In this document: piece by piece, positions 4,517-62,056 of the stretch
Numbering within the stretch: the first letter of the stretch is position 1
Layout: each line of letters starts with the position of its first letter
Sequence record: NC_061449.1
Reading direction: 5' to 3' (one strand)
Length of the DNA: 64,000 nucleotides
The notes under the pieces: model-generated
What the model saw: the letters and a program-made list of their open reading frames with translations, nothing else
Database searches by the model: none
Told to the model about the DNA's origin: nothing
Program-made: the position numbers and the translations under genes

Positions 4517-4527
4517 GGGCTAAACTC

Positions 4528-4731
4528 CTAACCAGTCAGTGTTGTCCAATCAGGTTGTCCCGATTGTCCGGCTTCTGGGTTTTTGACTTTCGTGTTATTG
4601 ATTGTCATACGAACCCAACGCACACTTCCGTCTGCGTCTTGAAACCGAACCTTCGTTCCACCGTATGCTAAATTAGCTACCCACCTGTCTCTTGAAGGGT
4701 CTTTGAAAGCTAAACGTGCATATGCTGGCAT
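4528..4731 (-). CDS. small hypothetical fibre-cluster protein
   Basis: 67 aa, fills the gap exactly; loosely resembles the N-terminus of 7652..9673. Confidence 0.7.
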   Translation of the reverse strand: MPAYARLAFKDPSRDRWVANLAYGGTKVRFQDADGSVRWVRMTINNTKVKNPEAGQSGQPDWTTLTG

Positions 4732-4734
4732 CGC

Positions 4735-7608
4735 TTAATCCTCAATCTCGTCAGGTTCCCAGCACAGGATAGGCCTGCGCCACACTTGGAATACGCCTTG
4801 TGGACTTGCAAGTCCGTCGAAGCAATCCATAGTTGTACCGCCACTGTTTCCACTCTGCATGAGAGTTGTGAGTCCGGCAGTCCACGATGCGCGTCCACCA
4901 GAGTCAGCCTCGAACAGTCCTTCCCATACCATGTCGAAAGCACCTTTCCATGCGTTGAAGTGATGCGAAGAATACGCACCGTCTTCTGTCGTACATAGAA
5001 CCATGTACTGATAATCTTTCACGCACGGAATGTTGTAGTTGTTACCGCGAGGCATTGTCGTACTGTTGCCGTTGTAGATACACTCCCAACCAGTGCGGTC
5101 TGATGCACCTGTCGTCATGAACAGAGGACGACGAATGATCATCATAATCCCGTTCTCTGTGCCGTGATTGTTCGACTTCTGGCAGAATGCGTTATGTCTA
5201 AAAGCACGGTCAGTTGTGAACGTCGTCGAGTTCGAGAAGTCACGGGTATAGTAGTTCGCTCCCCACTTAGGCAGATACTCTGCTGGTGGTACGAAGAAGT
5301 GACGTTCAGCAAGTTCAATCTCACCGTAACGGTCATACGCAAATACGATGTACTCATACCCAGGTGCTATGGTAATGTTGTGGCCTTGAGTGCCTACGCC
5401 GTTCCATTTCCACACAACCTGCCAGTCGTTTGAGTCACGCGTTGCTTCTTCGGTAATGAGCTGATACTTACGCTCATAGATGTGCCACACTTTCCCTTCT
5501 TCTGTGGTGTTGATGTATAGTGAGTTCGGGTCGTTGATGTTCCCGTTCTCAGTACCGCAGTAAATCTTATGCGACGCACCCGCAGAGTTATAGATAGTGC
5601 CGGACCCGATTGAACCAAACATATCCCAGTTCATCATCAGGTGAGAGGTACACATTTCGTTCTGACCGCTACCATCTGACGTTGTAATCAGATATTCGCA
5701 AAGGTCTTTAAACGGGTACTTAACATAGCGGTTGTTAGCTTTGTTTACAACGTGTACCCAGTCGTGCGATTGAATCTTCGGTACAGGGAAGCAAGGGTTA
5801 GTGACAGAAACAACGAAGGTTTTTGTCTCATACATAGGCAGCTTCTTGAAACGATTATCTCTGATCGTAACGCTATGCTGCATACCCATTGTTGAAGCAC
5901 CGTCTTGACTGCCGAGAACTTTGTAGTAACGCAAGTGACTGCTCTTGGTGTTTTCAAACAGACCGTTGAGCGCCATACTCATGTTACCTTCACGGTCAGT
6001 CCCTGTGACGTAAGGGAAGCCGTTCGTATCGAAGTCATAACCAACAGAGAAGTAGCTGTCAGTGTCAGAAGACTTAGCACCGCGATACATTTCGTTCCAC
6101 GCGTTACCCTCACCGATTCCCGGTTCACCGAACAGCGAGTAGGCAGCACGGTAAACATACTGCGAACCAGCGTAGACGCGACGTGATGCACCGATGCGAT
6201 ACATCGCTTGAGGCAAGCCACCTTGAAGTCGGTTAACGTCAGCAGTATCATAGGACACAACGTAGACGTAATGGTCAGAACCAATCGAGTTCAAGAATGC
6301 AGCGCAAGCAGCAGCATTAGCAACGCCTGGGTTAGTGCCCTCAGCAGATGCGTGAATGTCGAAGCGTTGACGTTCCACAAGCGCAAGGTCAGACTTACGA
6401 ATCTTATAGACGTTCCAGCCACGTTGATCTGTGTAGCGAGTACCGTTGAAGATTGTATAGCCTGTATCGCCTGTGTCGAGATAGCGCTGATAGCCTACAA
6501 CGTGCGAGAAGATTCTGCTACGTGCTGCAAGCGACTGCGCGTTCTCGTTCGACCAATTGACCGACACATCACCTGCTGCCATACGTGCTTGCCAATCATC
6601 AGGCTTGTACGGGTAGGTGGTAACATCGAAGTCTACCTGATAGGCTGAACCAGGTTCGACGCAGCATTTGTCTTTGTAGATGACAGGAGGATCGATGACA
6701 ACATCGTCAGGGATATCAACTTGACCGCAGTAGAATTGCTTCCACGTTCCAGGCTGGCCACCAATAGAGCCAGGACCTGACTGAGTTGTTCCTGTGAACT
6801 GATACGCAGCAGCGAGATGATAAGTCTGCTGGTTGTGCAACTGAGGCACGTTCGTCCAGCTAATGTGATTGCCAAACGTGTTCACGCTCTTGGTCTTCGC
6901 ATTAGGTGTAGCGACAACATACGCTTGACCGTTACTGCGTATACCGAGCGGGTTGAAGATCGCATTGAAGTTAACGTTACCTTCATATGCTCCCTTCTGC
7001 AATACAATCAGGTTCACACCGTTACGATGCGCTTCACGTAAAGCAGTAAGCATCGCAGTAGGCATACTCTGGTTAGGCGCAGACAGCAGCAGCATAACCG
7101 AGCTGAACTGTTTGAAATATTTATAGGTGCCGTCATATCCGTAAGCACCTGCATTGATTTCTTGCCAGCTATGCGCAAGCATATCGAGAGGGATACGCTG
7201 CATGTAGCTAACAAGCTGTCCCCATGATTCCATTGCTACATCATCATTCACTGGCGCAAGGTCAGAGATGACAAGCATTGTACTACCGAGAGTGACGTTC
7301 GAGTTATAGCCGCGTTGCGTAAGCAGATGACGCAGCACACCCATGTTGTTGATGTTCTTGTTTCGGTAGTTACCCAGCCAACCATAGTTGCCGTCAACCA
7401 TAGGGCTACCGTCACGAACAAAACGACCGTTCATATAGACAGCACCAAAGCCGCACACGAACGCTTGAGCATGACCATCAACTACAAACGAAGTGAAGCG
7501 AGTACCATCAACGGCCATAGCATCTACGCTTGCTTGGGAGCCATCGCCTGGGCTGCCACTAAATACGGGAGTAATGCCTCGCGCATATAAGCAACTTTGT
7601 TGCAGCAT
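4735..7608 (-). CDS. tail fibre / receptor-binding protein with ILEI/PANDER (GG-lectin-like) domain
   Basis: 957 aa; RGWNVY...RFDIH...VYVVSYD...IGAS...YRAAYSLFGEPG matches the ILEI pattern (about 6030-6430); repeated W-x-x-x-W/Y..YxYxV modules at the C-terminus. Confidence 0.7.
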   Translation of the reverse strand: MLQQSCLYARGITPVFSGSPGDGSQASVDAMAVDGTRFTSFVVDGHAQAFVCGFGAVYMNGRFVRDGSPMVDGNYGWLGNYRNKNINNMGVLRHLLTQRGYNSNVTLGSTMLVISDLAPVNDDVAMESWGQLVSYMQRIPLDMLAHSWQEINAGAYGYDGTYKYFKQFSSVMLLLSAPNQSMPTAMLTALREAHRNGVNLIVLQKGAYEGNVNFNAIFNPLGIRSNGQAYVVATPNAKTKSVNTFGNHISWTNVPQLHNQQTYHLAAAYQFTGTTQSGPGSIGGQPGTWKQFYCGQVDIPDDVVIDPPVIYKDKCCVEPGSAYQVDFDVTTYPYKPDDWQARMAAGDVSVNWSNENAQSLAARSRIFSHVVGYQRYLDTGDTGYTIFNGTRYTDQRGWNVYKIRKSDLALVERQRFDIHASAEGTNPGVANAAACAAFLNSIGSDHYVYVVSYDTADVNRLQGGLPQAMYRIGASRRVYAGSQYVYRAAYSLFGEPGIGEGNAWNEMYRGAKSSDTDSYFSVGYDFDTNGFPYVTGTDREGNMSMALNGLFENTKSSHLRYYKVLGSQDGASTMGMQHSVTIRDNRFKKLPMYETKTFVVSVTNPCFPVPKIQSHDWVHVVNKANNRYVKYPFKDLCEYLITTSDGSGQNEMCTSHLMMNWDMFGSIGSGTIYNSAGASHKIYCGTENGNINDPNSLYINTTEEGKVWHIYERKYQLITEEATRDSNDWQVVWKWNGVGTQGHNITIAPGYEYIVFAYDRYGEIELAERHFFVPPAEYLPKWGANYYTRDFSNSTTFTTDRAFRHNAFCQKSNNHGTENGIMMIIRRPLFMTTGASDRTGWECIYNGNSTTMPRGNNYNIPCVKDYQYMVLCTTEDGAYSSHHFNAWKGAFDMVWEGLFEADSGGRASWTAGLTTLMQSGNSGGTTMDCFDGLASPQGVFQVWRRPILCWEPDEIED

Positions 7609-7626
7609 GTTATGTCCTTAGATCGA

Positions 7627-7650
7627 TAAGAGGGGCCGAAGCCCCTTCTT
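7627..7650 (-). terminator. hairpin with UUCG loop, possible intrinsic terminator
   Basis: AGGGGC-TTCG-GCCCCT on the minus strand between two genes; weak U tract. Confidence 0.55.
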
Positions 7651-7651
7651 G

Positions 7652-9673
7652 TTATGCAAAGACTACGTTCGTGATCGCAATGTAATCCAGTTCTACACCG
7701 TCACCTCTATCAGAACTTGAGTAGAGGTATAGCCAAATTTCCTCACCTGCAGGAACATTGACGTTAATCGTGTACGACTGCATGGCTGTAGTGTTCAACG
7801 GATGGAACGCACTTCCGTTAGGGTCAGAACGTTCGTACCAACTAATGCCACTATGCCACGAACCCTGTTTACCAGAGTATCGAATAGCAACAGTGATTTG
7901 CTTGATACGACGGGTGAAGAAGTTATTCCACTTAATCCAACCTCTGGAGCCTCCCCAGAGAACACCATAGTCACCATCAGCAGCGCGTACTTGCGACCAG
8001 AAGTTACCAAAGCCACGACCACCTGTGTGTTCAATCTCGTAGCAGTACCACGGGAACGGGTCTGCTTCTGGAGGCTGCGCATTGCCGCCTTCGATTGTCA
8101 CACAACGATATGGAACAGTGAAGTCACTCACATTGATATGTGGTGGCTGAATCGGACAGTACACGTAGTACGACCAATCACATCCGATAGGCGCTGTCGC
8201 TCGCACTGTGATGTTAGAGCGAAGCACATGCTCAGGGTATTTCCAAAATTCGAGTGTGCCAGTCTTGCCCGCAGCAACGATAGAGGTATCGAGTACGTTC
8301 ATGTTCTGGTCAAACACTTCGAACTTGGTATCAAACGAGTTCGCTACGCAGACAACAAGCCCCGCGCGAATATCTGTCTGAGTTCCTAACGCAAAATTAT
8401 CTTCTGTGGTTGGATGACCGGCAGAGTATACGCTGTAACTCTGACATGGGTGCATGTATTCACGAGCACCACGTTCACCTGGGCAGTAGAGACTGTAGAA
8501 GCAACTCGCAAGCGATGCAGCATTGCCGAAGTCTTTGCTGACCACACGAACCATAATGTCACACGCAACGCCTTTAGGGTCAAAGTAGAAATACAGATAG
8601 CCTTCGCCTGTCTTAGCGTCGAGCGTTGTGGCAATACGTTGACCGCCTTGGTAGACCTCAATGAAGTCGAACGTTTCCCACGACGTGTAATCGAGATACA
8701 TCCAACCTGCAATCCAACCGATAAAGTGATAGTATTCGAAAGCGTTAGCGTTCTGAATACGTTCAGCAATAGGCCAGACTGTTGCGTGACATGGTGCAGG
8801 GAAGATTGGGCTGCCGATATAGTCAGGATGAATGACGTCAGGGAAGTTGATAACGTCATACGATGCCTGACTATCGAGCGCTAACCCACCACGGTCAGAC
8901 GGTGCAGCAAGACGAGGCGGATATACTTCGAGACTCCAGCCGTACCCTTGAGTTGTACGCACACGCACCATGATACGCATATCAGAAGCGTCAGGGTCGA
9001 ACTGGAATTTAATTCGAGAACGCCCTGTCAACTTGCCACACGTTGAAGCAACACGCGCACCCATGTGATATACATCGACGCTCGCACCGCCAGGCGCATA
9101 CGACGCAATCATCAGCTCGACATAACCTTCTATGGCTGGCATTGCATAGTACGTTTCAGTGATCACAGCACCACGTCCGTGAACAGACGCATATGGTACG
9201 TTGGGGTTAGCGTAAGTGCCTAATCCTGCGCGAGAAGCAACCCCAGTAGGGTCGTAGGATTCGATGGCCTTGATGCCGGGTCTGTTGATAGAACGACCAG
9301 TAGGAGGAGCGAAAGAGTTAACAAGACCGAAGCCAGTGCGACCAGCATCAGGCAAGTCAAACCCCGCAGGATAGCCGGTAAGTATGTCATACTTCTCACG
9401 ACCGCCACTCCCTATGCCATTGCCTGAGCCTTTGGTTGTTGACGTAGGACCGCCGCCACACGCGCCCGTTTCGAGATTCGAACACGGGTCATCGTATGTG
9501 GGGTCAAACGAGTCATCAATGAGATGCCAACGCTTGCCCCACTGGTTACGCACACTGAACTTCTCGGGAGTTAAAGGCGTCCAGTCTCCCTGATGTGTGC
9601 GTATGAACATAGGCGTGTCCACACAGTCATGCCAACCGTTATTCGCAGCATTACGAACGCGAAAACGAGACAT
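7652..9673 (-). CDS. Cys-rich virion fibre/adhesin protein with repeated beta-sandwich modules
   Basis: 673 aa; three related modules (V/I-D/E-V-Y..G.R.A.T) and an aromatic-rich C-terminal carbohydrate-binding-like domain. Confidence 0.7.
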   Translation of the reverse strand: MSRFRVRNAANNGWHDCVDTPMFIRTHQGDWTPLTPEKFSVRNQWGKRWHLIDDSFDPTYDDPCSNLETGACGGGPTSTTKGSGNGIGSGGREKYDILTGYPAGFDLPDAGRTGFGLVNSFAPPTGRSINRPGIKAIESYDPTGVASRAGLGTYANPNVPYASVHGRGAVITETYYAMPAIEGYVELMIASYAPGGASVDVYHMGARVASTCGKLTGRSRIKFQFDPDASDMRIMVRVRTTQGYGWSLEVYPPRLAAPSDRGGLALDSQASYDVINFPDVIHPDYIGSPIFPAPCHATVWPIAERIQNANAFEYYHFIGWIAGWMYLDYTSWETFDFIEVYQGGQRIATTLDAKTGEGYLYFYFDPKGVACDIMVRVVSKDFGNAASLASCFYSLYCPGERGAREYMHPCQSYSVYSAGHPTTEDNFALGTQTDIRAGLVVCVANSFDTKFEVFDQNMNVLDTSIVAAGKTGTLEFWKYPEHVLRSNITVRATAPIGCDWSYYVYCPIQPPHINVSDFTVPYRCVTIEGGNAQPPEADPFPWYCYEIEHTGGRGFGNFWSQVRAADGDYGVLWGGSRGWIKWNNFFTRRIKQITVAIRYSGKQGSWHSGISWYERSDPNGSAFHPLNTTAMQSYTINVNVPAGEEIWLYLYSSSDRGDGVELDYIAITNVVFA

Positions 9674-14620: not shown

Positions 14621-14628
14621 AAATTAGC
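14621..14628 (-). promoter_or_regulatory. GCTAATTT motif, putative late promoter
   Basis: Lies between a terminator and the RBS; the same 8-mer occurs in five other intergenic gaps. Confidence 0.6.
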
Positions 14629-20674: not shown

Positions 20675-21097
20675 TTATTGGCCCTTCATTGCAAACGTAA
20701 TGGATTGTTTGTCTTCGAGCTTAGGACAGCGCCATGTGACTACGCACACGTAGGTCTGTTCGAATTGATCGCTCGCTGTACACGCTGTTTGCACGTTCGT
20801 TACATCCTGCGTCAGCCCGTTATAAGGGTCTTCAAGGGCAAGGCGCATGTATGTTGCAATCCAGTCAGCAGTAGTCTGGTCAAACGGCTCAAATAGGTAT
20901 TTATATACATCTGCACCGAAGTTCTCGCGCCACTTGCGTGAACGTTTACGAGTACCGATTACCATCAGAATCTTCTGGACGATGCTGTCCATGTTCTGCA
21001 CGTTATCACGCGGCTCAAGTTGAATCCACGTATTGATATCACAATAGATGCGCTCACTAATGGGCACGTCTATCAATCGAATCCCGATTCCTGCCAT
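20675..21097 (-). CDS. baseplate gp25-like (GPW/gp25) protein
   Basis: 140 aa; SIVQKILMVIGTRKRSR..FGADVYKYLFEP motif. Confidence 0.85.
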   Translation of the reverse strand: MAGIGIRLIDVPISERIYCDINTWIQLEPRDNVQNMDSIVQKILMVIGTRKRSRKWRENFGADVYKYLFEPFDQTTADWIATYMRLALEDPYNGLTQDVTNVQTACTASDQFEQTYVCVVTWRCPKLEDKQSITFAMKGQ

Positions 21098-21387
21098 TAG
21101 CCAAATCTCACGTTAGAACTTCCGTTTGATGCAGTATCACCGCAACTGTTTGCATCACCTGCACGTTGGGCAGGCTTGCCATTGACACGTACACTTGAAC
21201 CTGAAGTAGCAACACCTGTATGGGGCGGCTTCTTTGGTTTCCAGTGTGGTCGATACTTGTCGCCAGAGCGAACACTTCCTTTGCCATTCACGAGCACATT
21301 AGACGAGGCTTGTGCCGGAACAACAGGGAAATAACCACTGTGACCAGTAGACAGGTCAGTGCCTAAACGAATAGCTTTCTGTCCCAT
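21097..21387 (-). CDS. PAAR-like spike tip protein (T4 gp5.4-like)
   Basis: Start ATG 21387 with AGGAG RBS; 96 aa; RLGTD..TGH, VLVNGK, VRVNGKPAQRAGD..SCG. Confidence 0.9.
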   Translation of the reverse strand: MGQKAIRLGTDLSTGHSGYFPVVPAQASSNVLVNGKGSVRSGDKYRPHWKPKKPPHTGVATSGSSVRVNGKPAQRAGDANSCGDTASNGSSNVRFG

Positions 21388-21409
21388 GATATTCTCCTCT
21401 GTTAGGCAC

Positions 21410-21417
21410 AAATTAGC
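21410..21417 (-). promoter_or_regulatory. GCTAATTT motif, putative late promoter
   Basis: Between the terminator at 21432-21464 and the PAAR RBS. Confidence 0.6.
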
Positions 21418-21431
21418 TTGTTACGCAGTAG

Positions 21432-21464
21432 AAACGAAAACGGGCGACCCGAAGGCCACCCGTT
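21432..21464 (-). terminator. intrinsic terminator
   Basis: GGGTGGCC-TTCG-GGTCGCCC followed by GTTTTCGTTT. Confidence 0.85.
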
Positions 21465-21496
21465 CTCTGTGCTTGGATTTGTGTCGCTTAACTCCC

Positions 21497-21655
21497 TTAC
21501 GCCCGATGCAAGTGCCACATAGCCGAAGCTACGGAGCCGGAGTTAATGACCGAGAGTGAAGCCGCACGCCACGGCAACAGTATGTGACTCTCGGAACCAG
21601 ATAGCAAGCGACCAAGCATCGCAATTGCTATCAGCGACACGAAGAACAAAATCAT
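21497..21655 (-). CDS. small hydrophobic peptide (52 aa)
   Basis: AGGAG RBS 6 nt before ATG 21655; MILFFVSLIAIAMLGRLL hydrophobic N-terminus; terminator just downstream. Confidence 0.55.
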   Translation of the reverse strand: MILFFVSLIAIAMLGRLLSGSESHILLPWRAASLSVINSGSVASAMWHLHRA

Positions 21656-21684
21656 GTTTGCTCCTGTGTCTCTCTGTAAGTAAA

Positions 21685-21698
21685 ACATTTGCAAATGT
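21685..21698. promoter_or_regulatory. perfect 14-bp palindrome ACATTTGCAAATGT, possible operator
   Basis: Seen directly; lies 30 nt upstream of the small ORF and at the edge of the structured region. Confidence 0.4.
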
Positions 21699-21739
21699 CG
21701 ATCAAGTTACTTCGAGTTGCCATTCGCCCGACTTCACTA

Positions 21740-22746
21740 TGGTTTCAACTCTCTTTCTCTCTTTACCGCCTGGGTTGCGGTCGAACCGCACACAAGAGCG
21801 TCACATAAAAGGCACACGGCGGAAAAGTGAAAAGTTCCGTGCGTCTTAAATGCAACAGCTCCAGCGAAGGAGGTGGCCCATCGGTGATCTGCGGTGGTTG
21901 ATACACTCTTTAACAATCGCTCTTGTTGTGCATTAAATCGTGGTAGGAACGCGATTGACCGCTAACAAGTCCTATACGATATTTCACTACCCGGAAAAGT
22001 GGGCAAGCTATGGCAGCACGTCAACGGCAGCATGGCGCGGACACACTCCATTGAACATTGTTAAGGGCAATGCTCAACAGGCTGTGAACAGCTTTGACCA
22101 AACGTAGAGTCGCTCGTCGCCCAACATCACTTGAGTATCTCGTCTACGTTCTTTTACTCCCTGAATACCATACAAGGAATACGGCACCCATGAGGGTCTG
22201 CGGATGTTTATCACTCTCAGACTCTTGCAGTTCAATCCTGTACGCAGTGTGTTGAGTCGTCCGCTGGATGACACACTACATACCCTCACCGTGCTGTACA
22301 TCGGTAGGAAAGAGCTGGTGGAAAGTTGTCATGAAAAGACTGCTAGCTGGTAGGCTTGCCTCTCTTCCCAATGTACACTTGCGCCAGCTAATGTACATCA
22401 GGCAGCGTAGGCTGCAATACTGCTGTCCCTGAAAGATTGACCACAGCGTTGAGACTTCGCTCCATCAATCTACGTGCCTAGAGGCGGTTGCCGTGCGTAT
22501 GTCTGAAAAGAATGTAAAACACTGGGCCTTGTGGGCGTCAGCAGCAGAGCAACGGTCTATCACGTGGGTGCCGGGGTTATCCTCACGATTACAGAGCGTA
22601 AGCTCAAACCGGCTGGAGGCTCACATGCTGCCCAGAAATACAGCGCATGAGTTTGATGGATCAGCAAGATGCCACCCGCGAAGAAAGCATCTTACCGCAA
22701 CAGTTAGATATTACTATCTGCAATTTTTATTTACAGATTTTTTTTT
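21740..22746 (+). ncRNA. candidate large (~1 kb) structured non-coding RNA
   Basis: No credible ORF in an otherwise gene-dense genome; more than 10 nested helices of 6-13 bp; G.U pairs and a GNRA loop favour the plus strand; ends at a T9 run. Boundaries and strand are approximate. Confidence 0.6.
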
Positions 22747-24508
22747 AAAACGCTTTACGTTCAACATTTGAATATAAAGTTTCATACGGCTCAGAGTACA
22801 GTTCAGGACCGCGTTGAGCGCGTACAGTCACGTAACCAGTGTGACGGTTGAACGCAGTGATTTCGACTGTAGGCTGTTTAGGCTTGATGGTCGCATAAAT
22901 CGGAGCGTTAAGCGTAGGTTCGTCTGTCTGAATCTTATTTACAGATTGCAGCGCAGCACCAGACAGCGTTGGCAGCTTGAATCGCAGTTCAGCGCGTTTC
23001 TGGCCGAACGCAGCACGAATCATACCGTTTTCCAACTGCACACCGTTCTGCTTGAGATACGCAGCGATGCGACGACCGATACCGGTAAGTTGATCGCGAG
23101 TGCGAGGGTCGAACGTACCTTCGAAGCTGATTGCTTCTGTAGGTTGACGCACAGACAGGTGCAGACCAGTATTGAAGTAGCCTTCGGTCAGCAGACGCAG
23201 GATCTCTTTAACGACCTCTTTCGTGTTCTGATTGATAGCAGCAATGCGCAGTTCTGGCACGTCTACTTTCACAGGGTCACGCAGTTCGGTCTGATTGTCC
23301 ATGTAGCCGAGAGACACATGCTTCGCGTTGGTGTATGTATGCTGCAACACACCAGTAGCGCGAATCAACACAGAGCCGCTTTTAGCGAGGTCATACAGTT
23401 CATCGCTGGTGGTTGTGCTGAACAGGTAGTAGTCTGTAGGCACTGCCATGCGATTGACAGCTTCGACCGCTTTCGTCTGCACTTCTTTCACAGTCTTGCC
23501 GAAGACAACACGACTACGGTTCGGCTGAGATGCAGACACAGGGAAGAACGCACCGTAGACAGCCTGAACGTTCTTCTTAATAGGCTGCTCAGACTGAACC
23601 TTCTTGCCACCCGCCAGTGGAGGCAGCTTAACACCCACCAGCTTGCCTTTAACGATGTGCTTGTTCTCTTTGACAGGCTTGAGCGAGTCAACGAGTTTAG
23701 CCAGCGATGCACCATCAAGAATCTTCTCAAGCGGAACAACAAGGTTCTGCGGCAGATAGTGTTTCTTGCGATACGTGTAGATGACGGTATCTTTCTTGAT
23801 CTGCAAAGGCGTTGCCATGTTGCGGCCAACTACGCCTACAGGCTGGAACGTGTTTACTTTGTCGTCAGCAATTGCACCGAACTGCTTGGTGAACTCAGTC
23901 TGCCCAATGATGTTAGCAACACGCAGATGACCACGAACGATAAACACGATCTTCGGTTCGTCTTTCAAGCGCAGCTCGTAACGGTCACGGTTCAGATAAA
24001 CCATGCTGTACTTGTCGCCCTTCTCCAGTTCAAGGTCATACTCGTCGTTAGCATCATCGACAACGACTTTCTTACCCTGATAAGTAGAGTAGGTACGAGC
24101 ACCAGCAGACTCAGAGGCAATCTCCATTGCCTTGCCTGTGTTAGACAGTGACGCGGCAAAGTCACGCACGGCTGGCATCAGGTCGAATGAAGACGATACT
24201 GCGTATGGTTCGCGCTTGTCGCCGAGGTGCAGATGCACAGCACTTGTGCTGGACATGAAGACGCTAGTACCTACATCTTCGTGCTTACCTGCAAAGTTCA
24301 TGCCACTAATACGTTCGATGACATTTGCATTCAGTGATTCGAAGCGAACATCGCTACCAGCAGCGAAGTCAAAGATTTCACCGTGACGCCAAGCATAGGC
24401 CACGTTGTTCGAACTAAGTCCGACAAACGCATCACCAATCTGACTGACGGTTAACGGCATGATACTCAGATCACGAATGATCGAGGACTGCTTTTTAATG
24501 AGGTTCAT
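22745..24508 (-). CDS. hypothetical protein, probable head-internal protein
   Basis: 587 aa; S-x-S-A motifs (MSSTSA, IASESA) followed by the shared Y-x-x-Y-x-G domain. Confidence 0.8.
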   Translation of the reverse strand: MNLIKKQSSIIRDLSIMPLTVSQIGDAFVGLSSNNVAYAWRHGEIFDFAAGSDVRFESLNANVIERISGMNFAGKHEDVGTSVFMSSTSAVHLHLGDKREPYAVSSSFDLMPAVRDFAASLSNTGKAMEIASESAGARTYSTYQGKKVVVDDANDEYDLELEKGDKYSMVYLNRDRYELRLKDEPKIVFIVRGHLRVANIIGQTEFTKQFGAIADDKVNTFQPVGVVGRNMATPLQIKKDTVIYTYRKKHYLPQNLVVPLEKILDGASLAKLVDSLKPVKENKHIVKGKLVGVKLPPLAGGKKVQSEQPIKKNVQAVYGAFFPVSASQPNRSRVVFGKTVKEVQTKAVEAVNRMAVPTDYYLFSTTTSDELYDLAKSGSVLIRATGVLQHTYTNAKHVSLGYMDNQTELRDPVKVDVPELRIAAINQNTKEVVKEILRLLTEGYFNTGLHLSVRQPTEAISFEGTFDPRTRDQLTGIGRRIAAYLKQNGVQLENGMIRAAFGQKRAELRFKLPTLSGAALQSVNKIQTDEPTLNAPIYATIKPKQPTVEITAFNRHTGYVTVRAQRGPELYSEPYETLYSNVERKAF

Positions 24509-27037: not shown

Positions 27038-27045
27038 AAATTAGC
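27038..27045 (-). promoter_or_regulatory. GCTAATTT motif, putative late promoter
   Basis: In the 38-nt gap, 30 nt upstream of ATG 27008. Confidence 0.6.
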
Positions 27046-39981: not shown

Positions 39982-39989
39982 AAATTAGC
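39982..39989 (-). promoter_or_regulatory. GCTAATTT motif, putative late promoter for sheath/tube
   Basis: In the gap, 43 nt upstream of the sheath ATG. Confidence 0.6.
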
Positions 39990-54666: not shown

Positions 54667-54674
54667 AAATTAGC
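54667..54674 (-). promoter_or_regulatory. GCTAATTT motif, putative late promoter
   Basis: Directly after the hairpin at 54686-54707 and upstream of the 52804 gene. Confidence 0.6.
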
Positions 54675-61270: not shown

Positions 61271-62056
61271 TCACTCCATTACCAGATAGGTTACAGTGAG
61301 TTTCGGTTTCGACGGTGATGTGCCGATATTCTTCATACGCCAAGAAATAGTGGACGTATTGTCTTTGTTGGACAGGAAAGAGTATCGACGCAGCTTACGA
61401 ACAATAGGACTGCCTTCGCTGTCCACGTCAGTAAACACACCATCATCTTCGAGAAAATTAGCAGTGGAACGGAATATATACGGGTTTCTGTCGTCACGAA
61501 GTGTACTTTGATACGCAGTCAACTCTACGTCAAAAGCGTTCAGTTTAACAGAAAGCAGCATAACAGTTTTGTTCATCGCCAGATCAAAGTCCAGATGCTG
61601 ACCTGGGGTAATATAGTCGGCGGCTTCGTACTCTACAGTCTTACGCACACCAGCACTCTCATTACCGCTCATATCAGCCCAGAACATTGTACCGTTTGCA
61701 CCTGACATGAGGGTCATGCCCGCATATTCAGGCTCAGGTACTTGCTTACTCGGGTCAAGTCCAACAACTGTCAGACCTGTTTCATCCACAGCAGTGACGA
61801 ACGGCGATTCGAACTTGTAGTTGGAACCGCCGAACTTCGCTTCTTCCCACGTCACGTTGTCTGCACCAAGTTGATACATCTTCTTGGTCTCAGTGACGTA
61901 ACATAACATCCCAGGCTTTTTATTGCCTACGGACATTGTGTCACGATCATTGAGTGTAGCCAGACAGCGCATACCCCCTCGAAGATATTTGTCTTCAAGG
62001 AGGTATGGGAGTGCTGCGGATGCTGGTAACAGAAACGAAGTCATGTTAACCGGCAT
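61271..62056 (-). CDS. fibre-associated protein
   Basis: 261 aa; LRGGMRCLATLNDRDTM....KPGMLCYV.ET.KMYQL is a common phage fibre N-terminal motif; AGGAG RBS. Confidence 0.7.
   Translation of the reverse strand: MPVNMTSFLLPASAALPYLLEDKYLRGGMRCLATLNDRDTMSVGNKKPGMLCYVTETKKMYQLGADNVTWEEAKFGGSNYKFESPFVTAVDETGLTVVGLDPSKQVPEPEYAGMTLMSGANGTMFWADMSGNESAGVRKTVEYEAADYITPGQHLDFDLAMNKTVMLLSVKLNAFDVELTAYQSTLRDDRNPYIFRSTANFLEDDGVFTDVDSEGSPIVRKLRRYSFLSNKDNTSTISWRMKNIGTSPSKPKLTVTYLVME

Follow-up and report, generated by a model that had tools for sequence, protein, structure and literature searches.

The 64-kb stretch analyzed here (the window) is part of the genome of Erwinia phage pEa_SNUABM_17 (MZ443777, NC_061449.1; Alexandravirus, 264 kb; abbreviated S17), and window positions are record positions minus 62000. 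Between the gene for a 587-amino-acid (aa) protein and the gene for a PAAR spike-tip protein, the window contains a gap that very probably encodes a genuine structured RNA of a new family, read from the minus strand. The original prediction, made from the letters of the window, had placed a structured non-coding RNA here in what it took to be the sole large gap free of open reading frames (ORFs), and indeed the second-largest intergenic spacer is 218 nt and most are shorter than 85 nt. That all genes share one strand was also borne out, as the minus strand carries every credible gene of the window. The limits first given for the gap, 21740-22746, were too narrow: the conserved gap is 21388-22744 (1357 nt) and includes a small ORF (21655-21497, minus strand) and a terminator, both absent from the earlier description. 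GC content and composition of the gap are the same as those of its flanks. The proposal of a new, large, multidomain structured RNA is upheld by covariation over 15 to 16 lineages, by held-out tests, by two covarying pseudoknots, and by a blank Rfam search. Positions of the features are collected in Table 1.

BLASTN found the gap in 46 phage records, with identities graded 100, 92, 88, 82, 81, 77, 73, 72, and 71%, and the Y3, S14/S7, and S13-type phages were alignable in islands only. The distance from the stop codon of the 587-aa gene to the start of the PAAR gene was 1267 to 1456 nt in 15/15 retrieved phages and 1465 nt in L046, the one additional lineage contributed by a metagenome scan. 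The 16 lineages that carry the gap (1267 to 1465 nt) belong to Alexandravirus, Sasquatchvirus (Y3), the S14/S13 group, and the metagenomic L046; lineage L030 also carries it, but its gap ends at 862 nt with the contig.

Folding of the single sequence in 200-nt windows gave plus-strand z-scores with a mean of about -0.7 and minus-strand z-scores with a mean of about -1.2, and the flanking genes behaved alike. Thus, the dense self-complementarity originally claimed is not above chance, and the signal emerges only when phages are compared. RNAalifold analysis of 12 Alexandravirus sequences against column shuffles gave minus-strand z-scores of -3 to -22 and plus-strand z-scores of -2.6 to -8.9 in every window, versus +1.9 to -3.6 in coding flanks of the same phages. 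A 15-lineage alignment (A2) underlies a consensus of 347 pairs in 55 helices, for which slid partners and 500 shuffles served as controls. Some 93.7% of cells were paired, compared to 34 to 42% with slid partners, and compensatory (two-sided) change occurred in 159 pairs, compared to 37 to 54 with slid partners and 87 in shuffled alignments. None of the 500 shuffles reached the observed value on any measure. The expectation that relatives would show conservation and covariation was therefore confirmed, with the gap in 16 lineages and 159 compensatory pairs.

A held-out test was performed in which the structure was derived from 11 Alexandravirus sequences only and projected onto lineages that had not been used. 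Y3, S14, and S13 (58 to 60% identity) kept 78 to 81% of pairs and L046 (66% identity) kept 86%, compared to a slid control of roughly 40% in each case. Held-out pairs in which both positions had changed were still canonical in 64 to 81% of cases, versus 26 to 56% in the control. Of the ten helices originally drawn by eye, four or five are kept in relatives, and the other five have only 0.48 to 0.66 of cells paired. Those kept are 22101-08/22143-50 (fraction of cells paired, 0.91), 22594-605 (0.92), 22434-40/22465-71 (0.85), and 22256-62/22266-72 (0.80); helix 22666-72/22687-93 stands at 0.67 with three to five kinds of pair at each position, a hint of compensation. The repeated words noted at the outset were correctly located, but these 8- to 10-mers are not conserved among relatives.

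Two regions of the consensus, module 1 and its paralogue module 2, each combine a hairpin loop of sequence GCGGR with a covarying complement YCCGC located 60 to 85 nt downstream. The stem of module 1 (helix 18) shows compensatory change in 10/10 pairs. Pseudoknot 1 (PK1) is GCGGA/UCCGC in most lineages, GCGGG/CCCGC in S14 and S13, and GCAGG/CCUGC in JACCDR; it is 100% paired, and all changes are two-sided. Pseudoknot 2 (PK2) occurs as GCGGU/ACCGC, as GCAGG/CCUGC in the Alexandra group, as GCGGG/CCCGC in S3 and JACCDR, and as GCUGG/CCAGC in S14. In a formal test of the pseudoknots, 94.5% of cells were paired versus 22 to 48% with slid partners, every change was two-sided, and 0/500 shuffles reached the observed values for paired cells, changed cells, or covariation. 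Moreover, PK1 and PK2 were the sole 5-bp candidates in an unbiased scan for non-nested covarying stacks. A covariance model (CM), R1, was built on one domain (22285-22197); it scores 92.9 bits at module 1, detects module 1 in every lineage, and finds the module-2 position in Y3 (E value of 1.6e-4) and L046 (E value of 0.012), with weak matches at that site in S17, AD1, phB78, and 2910A. Because the model recovers a second copy and because the GCGGR and YCCGC elements covary in both, we interpret the RNA as containing two paralogous pseudoknotted modules among many conserved domains.

The strand was assigned from the asymmetry of wobble pairs. Among 212 pairs that RNAalifold predicted on both strands, the minus-strand reading contains 113 G.U cells versus 11 A.C cells, where an A.C cell is a G.U pair on the plus strand. 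The minus-strand RNAalifold z-score was more negative in 13/15 windows, and hairpin loops exchange UUCG and GAAA on the minus strand. Because of these three observations, the RNA lies in the gene sense rather than antisense to it. The suggestion that the RNA is probably antisense to every gene, which had leaned on G.U pairs said to favor the plus strand, is thus contradicted by the wobble count, the z-scores, and the loop exchanges, as well as by a co-oriented promoter motif and terminator described below. We conclude from these comparisons that the structured RNA belongs to the minus strand.

The body of the gap is non-coding. On neither strand do the phages have an ORF in common, and the three phases contain similar numbers of variable sites, with no 3-nt periodicity. 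Indel runs between 22700 and 21700 (n = 320) were multiples of three in 14% of cases and not in 86%, and the pieces between stop codons, searched singly against Pfam and PHROGs, matched no family. A pseudogene or recoded gene covering 22720-21671 was excluded by six-frame reading, by the periodicity and indel lengths, and by the piecewise searches. Taken with the consensus, the alignments establish that secondary structure and pseudoknots are under selection and that the 5′ part is non-coding.

The RNA matches no known family. Rfam 15 gave 0 matches at the gathering score in the window and seven related loci, and at an E value of ≤10 it gave only three chance subthreshold matches in the gap, of 17 to 21 bits and to unrelated families; the novelty claimed at the start therefore stands. 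In the same window and seven relatives, no CM of the large GOLLD, ROOL, OLE, HEARO, or raiA-type families matched at its gathering score. ARAGORN found no tRNA or tmRNA anywhere in the 64 kb, in agreement with the earlier impression that hallmarks of tRNA, tmRNA, RNase P, and group I and II introns are lacking, for none of which Rfam gave a match in the gap even at an E value of ≤10. Group I and II introns (RF00028, RF00029, and the D1-D4 models) were likewise rejected, and an intron here would have no split host gene because both flanking genes are intact and uninterrupted. A diversity-generating retroelement template or other repeated element was rejected since the window holds no paralogous copy elsewhere. 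A CsrA/RsmA sponge was also rejected: 14 to 21 GGA motifs per 1.3 kb equal both the antisense strand and random expectation, and only 4 are conserved, of which 3 are base paired.

Both ends of the unit are marked by conserved sequence. The segment 22737-22708 occurs only once in the window, and its conservation across 15 phages is 99%, versus roughly 58% identity in the rest of the gap. A structural hairpin was considered for this invariant 5′ element and rejected by eye: its variants in JACCDR and L030 are not compensatory. It behaves like a sequence motif, probably a promoter. The core AATCTGTAAATA..AATT directly follows the stop codon of the 587-aa homologue in Yoloswag, S5, JA11, and Yersinia phage fHe-Yen9-02, and in Yoloswag and S5 it is preceded by a terminator. 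Core CTGTAAATA has 10 copies in 114 kb (four in the window and six in record positions 1-50000, compared to 0.29 expected per 50 kb); all 10 are co-oriented with genes, 8 lie 16 to 80 nt before a gene start, two of these 16 and 19 nt from the ATG, and 2 lie inside genes. The pattern fits a -10-like phage promoter element from which transcription would start a few nucleotides downstream, and relatives of this clade encode their own sigma factors (PMC7412058). An exact 13-mer copy, AATCTGTAAATAA, is found 200 nt upstream of the copy that belongs to the RNA, near the 3′ end of the 587-aa coding sequence and within it; it may act as an internal promoter or may have arisen by chance from the codons for QSVNKIQ.

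At the other end, a strong intrinsic terminator (helix 54) is nearly invariant, with exchanges of GC/AU and GU/GC in its stem. Motif GCTAATTT lies just outside the unit. The window contains eight exact copies of it, versus 1.35 expected, and each is on the minus strand; seven of the eight are intergenic and upstream of structural or other operons, often directly after an intrinsic terminator, and the copy at 21417-21410 is invariant in 15/15 phages. Record positions 1-50000 contain a single copy. We consider GCTAATTT likely to be a phage promoter element, perhaps a late one. In addition, an invariant 8- to 9-nt complementarity between 21487-21478 and 21414-21406 (minus strand; ACACAAAU/AUUUGUGY) brackets the terminator and overlaps the GCTAATTT region; because it shows no covariation, it may be either a read-through clamp or a coincidence. 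Given the terminator and the CTGTAAATA-class motif, the unit would extend from about 22721 to about 21428, or ~1.29 kb.

Within these ends lies the small ORF, and because the unit finishes with this conserved frame, it is not purely non-coding, as had been assumed. The frame is preceded by a good Shine-Dalgarno (SD) sequence, AGGAG, and is open from one aligned start region in 15/15 full-length lineages, with 47 to 53 codons. In S14 and S13, the aligned start column reads ATT, and an ATGATG in the same frame precedes it by three codons. Net indels within the ORF are 3 or 15 nt. Homologues occupy the equivalent slot in Yoloswag (gp109), S5, JA11/JA29, L039, L041, and L042, and no family of Pfam, PHROG, NCBIfam, or PADLOC was matched. 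By these sequence measures the frame is conserved. Its 3′ half overlaps covarying hairpins 21633-21599, 21594-21550, and 21543-21490, and in the C-terminal part, the UAA/UGA stop and a CUU/CUC codon covary within a stem, with the S17 and S14 groups differing in frame. The alignment thus indicates that the C-terminal half of the peptide is shaped by RNA pairing.

In more distant genera, the slot is 1.7 to 2.4 kb (Yoloswagvirus, Rivsvirus S5, Salmondvirus JA11/JA29, and related contigs) and contains the promoter element, 650 to 1250 nt without credible ORFs, genes for small gp112-like and gp111-like proteins, and the small peptide ORF. In these leaders (Yoloswag, S5, JA11, and others), the sequence alignment is too poor to project the whole structure, and the evidence consists of motif order and spacing and the module-1 CM. 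Motifs m4 (CAUUGGGRAG) and m6 (GUG..AACAYCCGC) keep their order and spacing unchanged, PK1 complementarity is retained (GCGGG/CCCGC in Yoloswag), and in the leaders of Yoloswag, S5, L039, L041, and L042, the module-1 CM gives weak matches with the expected position and orientation (E values of 0.0025 to 0.29). For these reasons, at least the 5′ half of the RNA is older than Alexandravirus. A pattern scan of IMG/VR confined the module to this clade, as seven further matches were chance matches with no CM hit. Its counterpart in the literature is the "hairy Myoviridae" group of jumbo phages (PMC6143709).

The protein cassette of the distant slots was located at 5985-6775 in L031, 6031-7099 in L032, and 6013-6324 in L033, and also in L039-L042 (Yoloswag, S5, and JA-type). 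It includes a conserved family with motif SAEKSAGLRKLLEAKDC and a second small transmembrane protein, and nothing equivalent to the cassette proteins is present in the Alexandravirus gap. Loss of cassette genes with expansion of the RNA in their place, or the reverse, would account for the difference. Some relatives have an extra ORF for a ~40-aa basic protein (..PAKGPKIP..) between GCTAATTT and the PAAR gene, namely L003 (AD1), L008 (2910A), L009 (S3), L046, L031 (Yoloswag, 7259-7414), and L032 (S5, 7589-7714); S17 and most close relatives are without it.

The interpretation that we prefer over its rivals, and think somewhat more probable than all of them together, is a dual-function phage RNA that resides in the minus-strand unit and acts through its fold. 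Transcription would start at the A-rich CTGTAAATA element at 22736-22728, of a class that otherwise precedes many small non-structural genes, and would end at the terminator at 21467-21425, after which GCTAATTT would restart transcription for the PAAR and baseplate genes. The first ~1050 nt are non-coding and fold into some 45 to 55 helices in local domains, and the last ~160 nt contain the peptide ORF. As a scaffold or decoy in trans, the large 5′ part may constitute a stable RNA particle able to bind itself or a partner from the phage or the host. The 3′ cistron would supply a small membrane peptide, whose translation local structure may damp. For this mechanism in its particulars, we put the chances at slightly under even. 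A dual function is favored because about 50 helices and two pseudoknots are kept over 1 kb, because the hairpin around the SD sequence is local, with no covarying connection between the ribosome-binding site and the 5′ domains, and because protein genes separate the module from the peptide ORF in the distant genera. In Yoloswag, S5, L039, L041, and L042, the promoter-proximal leader keeps module 1 and is followed by 1 to 1.5 kb of real protein genes before the small ORF; with those genes intervening, the leader is not tied to the ribosome-binding site of that ORF. At 1 kb and with tertiary pairing, the fold far exceeds known cis-regulators in size, and the bacterial and phage leaders described to date are several times smaller.

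A more specific form of the dual-function RNA is an RNA-only or RNA-protein particle in "hairy" jumbo myoviruses of Erwinia, Dickeya, and Yersinia, acting as a decoy or scaffold in trans or associated with the virion or its assembly. Such a particle would contain the duplicated pseudoknot modules, carry a membrane-peptide mRNA as its 3′ end, and include the largest structured non-coding RNA domain so far known from a phage (~1.05 kb). An association with the virion or its assembly is suggested by the fixed place of the RNA at the head of the baseplate block. We advance this form only tentatively.

Several points weigh against a dual function. The folding energy of the single sequence is unexceptional, and structures derived with RNAalifold are biased towards covariation, which the held-out and slid-partner controls mitigate. 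Support for an internal duplication is moderate for most phages (E value of about 1). A promoter and start site of its own, and accumulation as one discrete transcript, are predictions from the sequence. Neither a terminator nor a processing signal separates the structured part from the ORF; one mRNA with a giant leader is the simplest reading of the anatomy. The structured part is promoter proximal and upstream of ORFs in every genus, as cis-regulators are.

The last two points belong equally to the main rival, in which the 1-kb fold is solely a giant cis-acting leader that controls transcription, stability, or translation of the downstream cistron or cistrons (the small peptide here and the small-gene cassette in Yoloswag- and S5-type phages), with the modules as sensors or protein-binding platforms. 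Two further features are consistent with control in cis: the SD sequence and AUG of the small ORF lie inside a conserved hairpin, and each module has a local hairpin in competition with its pseudoknot, an arrangement that would allow switching. The SD hairpin is nevertheless local and self-contained, and no covarying long-range pairing connects the ribosome-binding site to the 5′ domains or modules. The separation of module and ORF in the distant genera, the failure of Rfam to match a known aptamer class, and the size of the fold also tell against it. Because of its constant promoter-proximal position and the lack of an internal terminator before the ORF, we retain the cis-acting leader as an alternative, albeit a rather unlikely one.

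The hydrophobic peptide might instead be the essential product, in a type I toxin-antitoxin-like (hok/sok-style) or lysis-timing cassette whose long structured mRNA is silent until processed and may be opposed by an antisense RNA. The peptide of 47 to 53 aa has an N-terminal transmembrane-like helix and is conserved across at least seven genera, its SD sequence is sequestered in a hairpin, and the mRNA is highly structured. Nonetheless, the peptide matches none of the Hok/Gef, Ldr, TisB, or other toxin families and gave no PADLOC hit, and the plus strand lacks a convincing promoter directed at the ORF, as its single sigma70-like match (21955-21983) is 300 nt off and within chance. A 1-kb pseudoknotted leader is far beyond such systems, and the C-terminal half of the peptide evolves as RNA rather than protein. 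We regard a cassette of this kind as quite improbable.

Two readings have very little probability. In the first, which was that of the original prediction, the functional RNA is on the plus strand. A hairpin followed by T9 at 22716-22746 and a GTAA (GNRA) loop at 22598-22601 point that way, and the plus-strand RNAalifold z-score is also negative, as the mirror image of a real structure would be. The T9 run is indeed present in S17 but is specific to it and not conserved among relatives, the plus-strand hairpin shows a C.A mismatch where the minus strand has U.G, and the wobble count, the z-scores, the terminator, and both promoter motifs are all in favor of the minus strand. In the second, the element acts as DNA, serving in recombination or as an origin of replication or packaging, with hairpins in the minus-sense single strand. 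G.T wobble is tolerated in DNA hairpins too, so strand asymmetry alone is no proof of RNA, and the region lies in a jumbo phage with unmapped replication and packaging sites. This is similarly hard to credit, as a promoter motif and an intrinsic terminator of one polarity bound the element, the UUCG/GNRA loop exchanges and pseudoknots are hallmarks of RNA, and there are no repeats, iterons, or AT-rich unwinding region, with a GC content equal to that of the flanks. Finally, a decayed or recoded protein gene, for which the real small protein genes in the equivalent slot of distant genera might speak, or a member of a known RNA family (group I/II intron, GOLLD, ROOL, OLE, RNase P, or tmRNA) is negligibly probable given the lack of periodicity, indels of any length, stop-to-stop pieces that match nothing, intact flanking genes, and negative Rfam and ARAGORN searches.

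Large structured RNAs of unknown function are rare, and each, as with OLE, GOLLD, and ROOL, has opened new biology. GOLLD is ~800 nt and ROOL is ~580 nt. Both are large ornate RNAs often borne by phages or prophages (Weinberg et al. 2017, PMC5737381), and cryo-electron microscopy has shown them to form cages (bioRxiv 10.1101/2024.12.08.627333). Like them, the RNA described here exceeds 500 nt, is multidomain, phage borne, and supported by covariation, contains pseudoknots or tertiary pairings, and was discovered as a conserved ORF-free gap. Unlike them, it has ~1050 nt of non-coding sequence in a ~1290-nt transcript, occurs in the virion-gene block of lytic Enterobacterales jumbo phages, and carries a small ORF in cis, and Rfam detects no homology in sequence or structure. 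In contrast to their typical context, no tRNA or tmRNA is nearby in the 64 kb, and the neighbors are the KMPT-N protein and the PAAR and baseplate genes. We conclude that this is a new family, which can be grouped loosely with the other large ornate RNAs of phages.

Other systems share parts of the anatomy. Dual-function RNAs combine a structured regulator with the mRNA of a small, often membrane-active peptide, as in Staphylococcus RNAIII/hld and in SgrS/SgrT. Similar to these, the RNA has many hairpins, a short ORF for a hydrophobic peptide, a terminator, and what is probably its own promoter; it differs in being 2.5 to 6 times larger, in having its ORF at the extreme 3′ end, in encoding an unrelated peptide family, and in showing no homology. 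With type I toxin mRNAs (hok/sok), it shares an ORF for a hydrophobic peptide of ~50 aa (<60 aa), a conserved mRNA fold, and an occluded SD sequence, but there is no family match, no antisense gene was detected, and no covarying 5′-3′ fold-back pairing is present; leaders of such mRNAs are 100 to 300 nt, versus ~1 kb here. Tandem riboswitches and phage put antitermination RNAs likewise have two homologous modules in series with loop-to-downstream pseudoknots, promoter proximal and upstream of ORFs, whereas the modules here match no Rfam aptamer or put model, are ~300 nt apart among other domains, and have no evident adjacent expression platform.

The RNA occurs in lytic phages that can be cultivated on laboratory hosts, namely, Erwinia amylovora phages (fire-blight biocontrol), Dickeya phage AD1, and Erwinia phage Y3, and a literature search found no publication on Alexandravirus, Y3, AD1, or PaBG that mentions it. 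Its comparative support is unusually clean, with compensatory pairs, covarying pseudoknots, and held-out lineages in agreement and with defined ends. The analysis also brings out two classes of promoter motif and a conserved small membrane peptide in this clade of jumbo phages. Action of the RNA in trans would add to the ways in which phages manipulate their hosts by means of RNA; were it to act in cis, no other structured leader known from bacterial viruses would come near it in size.

Table 1. Features of the RNA unit and its surroundings (window positions, except for the copies in L070)
Feature	Position	Strand	Description
587-aa protein	22745..24508	minus	KMPT-N domain (residues 140-201), phrog_32352; upstream neighbor, intact in all relatives
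Promoter-like element AAATCTGTAAATAAAAATTGCAGATAGTAATATC	22707..22740	minus	Core CTGTAAATA at 22736-22728; probable start near 22721 (+/-3)
(A-rich)CTGTAAATA, window copies	22736-22728, 22944-22936, 32762-32754, 52801-52793	minus	
(A-rich)CTGTAAATA, copies in L070	7816, 10486, 20958, 36854, 40000, 44031	plus	
Multidomain structured body	21671..22720	minus	Non-coding, ~1050 nt
5′ domains	22427..22651	minus	Helices 2-11; compensatory pairs 9, 1, 3, 3, 6, 3, 5 among them
5′ domain hairpins	22651-22620; 22613-22570	minus	Hairpin; branched hairpin (inner 22605-22594)
5′ domain, further parts	22565-22472; 22471-22434; 22568-22566/22429-22427	minus	Long hairpin; hairpin; closing helix
Module 1	22197..22285	minus	10-bp covarying stem 22282-22273/22250-22241, loop AGCGGA
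PK1	22264-22260/22204-22200	minus	GCGGA pairs with UCCGC
Central domain	22015..22198	minus	Helices 22-30; compensatory pairs 8, 7, 5, 8 among them
Central domain parts	22198-22195/22099-22096	minus	Around 22194-22157 and 22151-22100 (inner 22135-22120)
Central domain, further hairpins	22092-22081, 22080-22048, 22047-22015	minus	
Module 2 (paralogue of module 1)	21888..21991	minus	Stem 21980-21970/21948-21937, hairpin 21933-21901
PK2	21962-21958/21895-21891	minus	GCGGU pairs with ACCGC
3′ non-coding domain	21714..21885	minus	Helices 38-43; compensatory pairs 2, 8, 7, 3, 5, 3
3′ domain parts	21885-21877/21774-21765; 21751-21714	minus	Around 21866-21791, 21847-21809, 21789-21777; then hairpin
SD/AUG hairpin of small ORF	21636..21670	minus	Helix 44: 11 pairs, 93% paired; SD columns pair with codons 4-6
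Small ORF	21497..21655	minus	52 codons and stop; hydrophobic N-terminal helix (MILFFVSLIAIAMLGRLLS...)
Intrinsic terminator	21425..21467	minus	Terminator scan; 13-14-bp G+C-rich stem, UUCG loop (21467-21436), then GUUUUCGUUUCU
GCTAATTT, likely structural-operon promoter motif	21410..21417	minus	Outside the RNA unit, marks its end
GCTAATTT, window copies	1481-1488, 4670-4677, 14621-14628, 21410-21417, 27038-27045, 39982-39989, 54667-54674, 61455-61462	minus	
PAAR spike-tip protein	21097..21387	minus	96 aa; downstream neighbor, first gene of gp25-like/baseplate-wedge block

Both flanking genes are full length and collinear with homologues in 57 phage records. The 587-aa neighbor is 42 to 100% identical across all genera with the RNA or leader slot and always lies immediately upstream of that slot. 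The second-largest spacer of the window (4517-4734, minus strand) contains a GCTAATTT motif. In GenBank, coding sequence (CDS) pEaSNUABM17_00113 is annotated inside the RNA at 22204-22353 on the plus strand, and other records have calls at 2009-2284 and 2106-2573 (L010), 2405-2548 (L005), and 1865-2026 (L011). Across several GenBank/SNUABM records, such CDSs vary between phages, match no family, and coincide in part with covarying helices; almost certainly they do not represent real genes, and the public annotation of these "hypothetical proteins" is hereby corrected. Curated annotations of Alexandra, AD1, Y3, phB78, and S14 leave the gap without a CDS.

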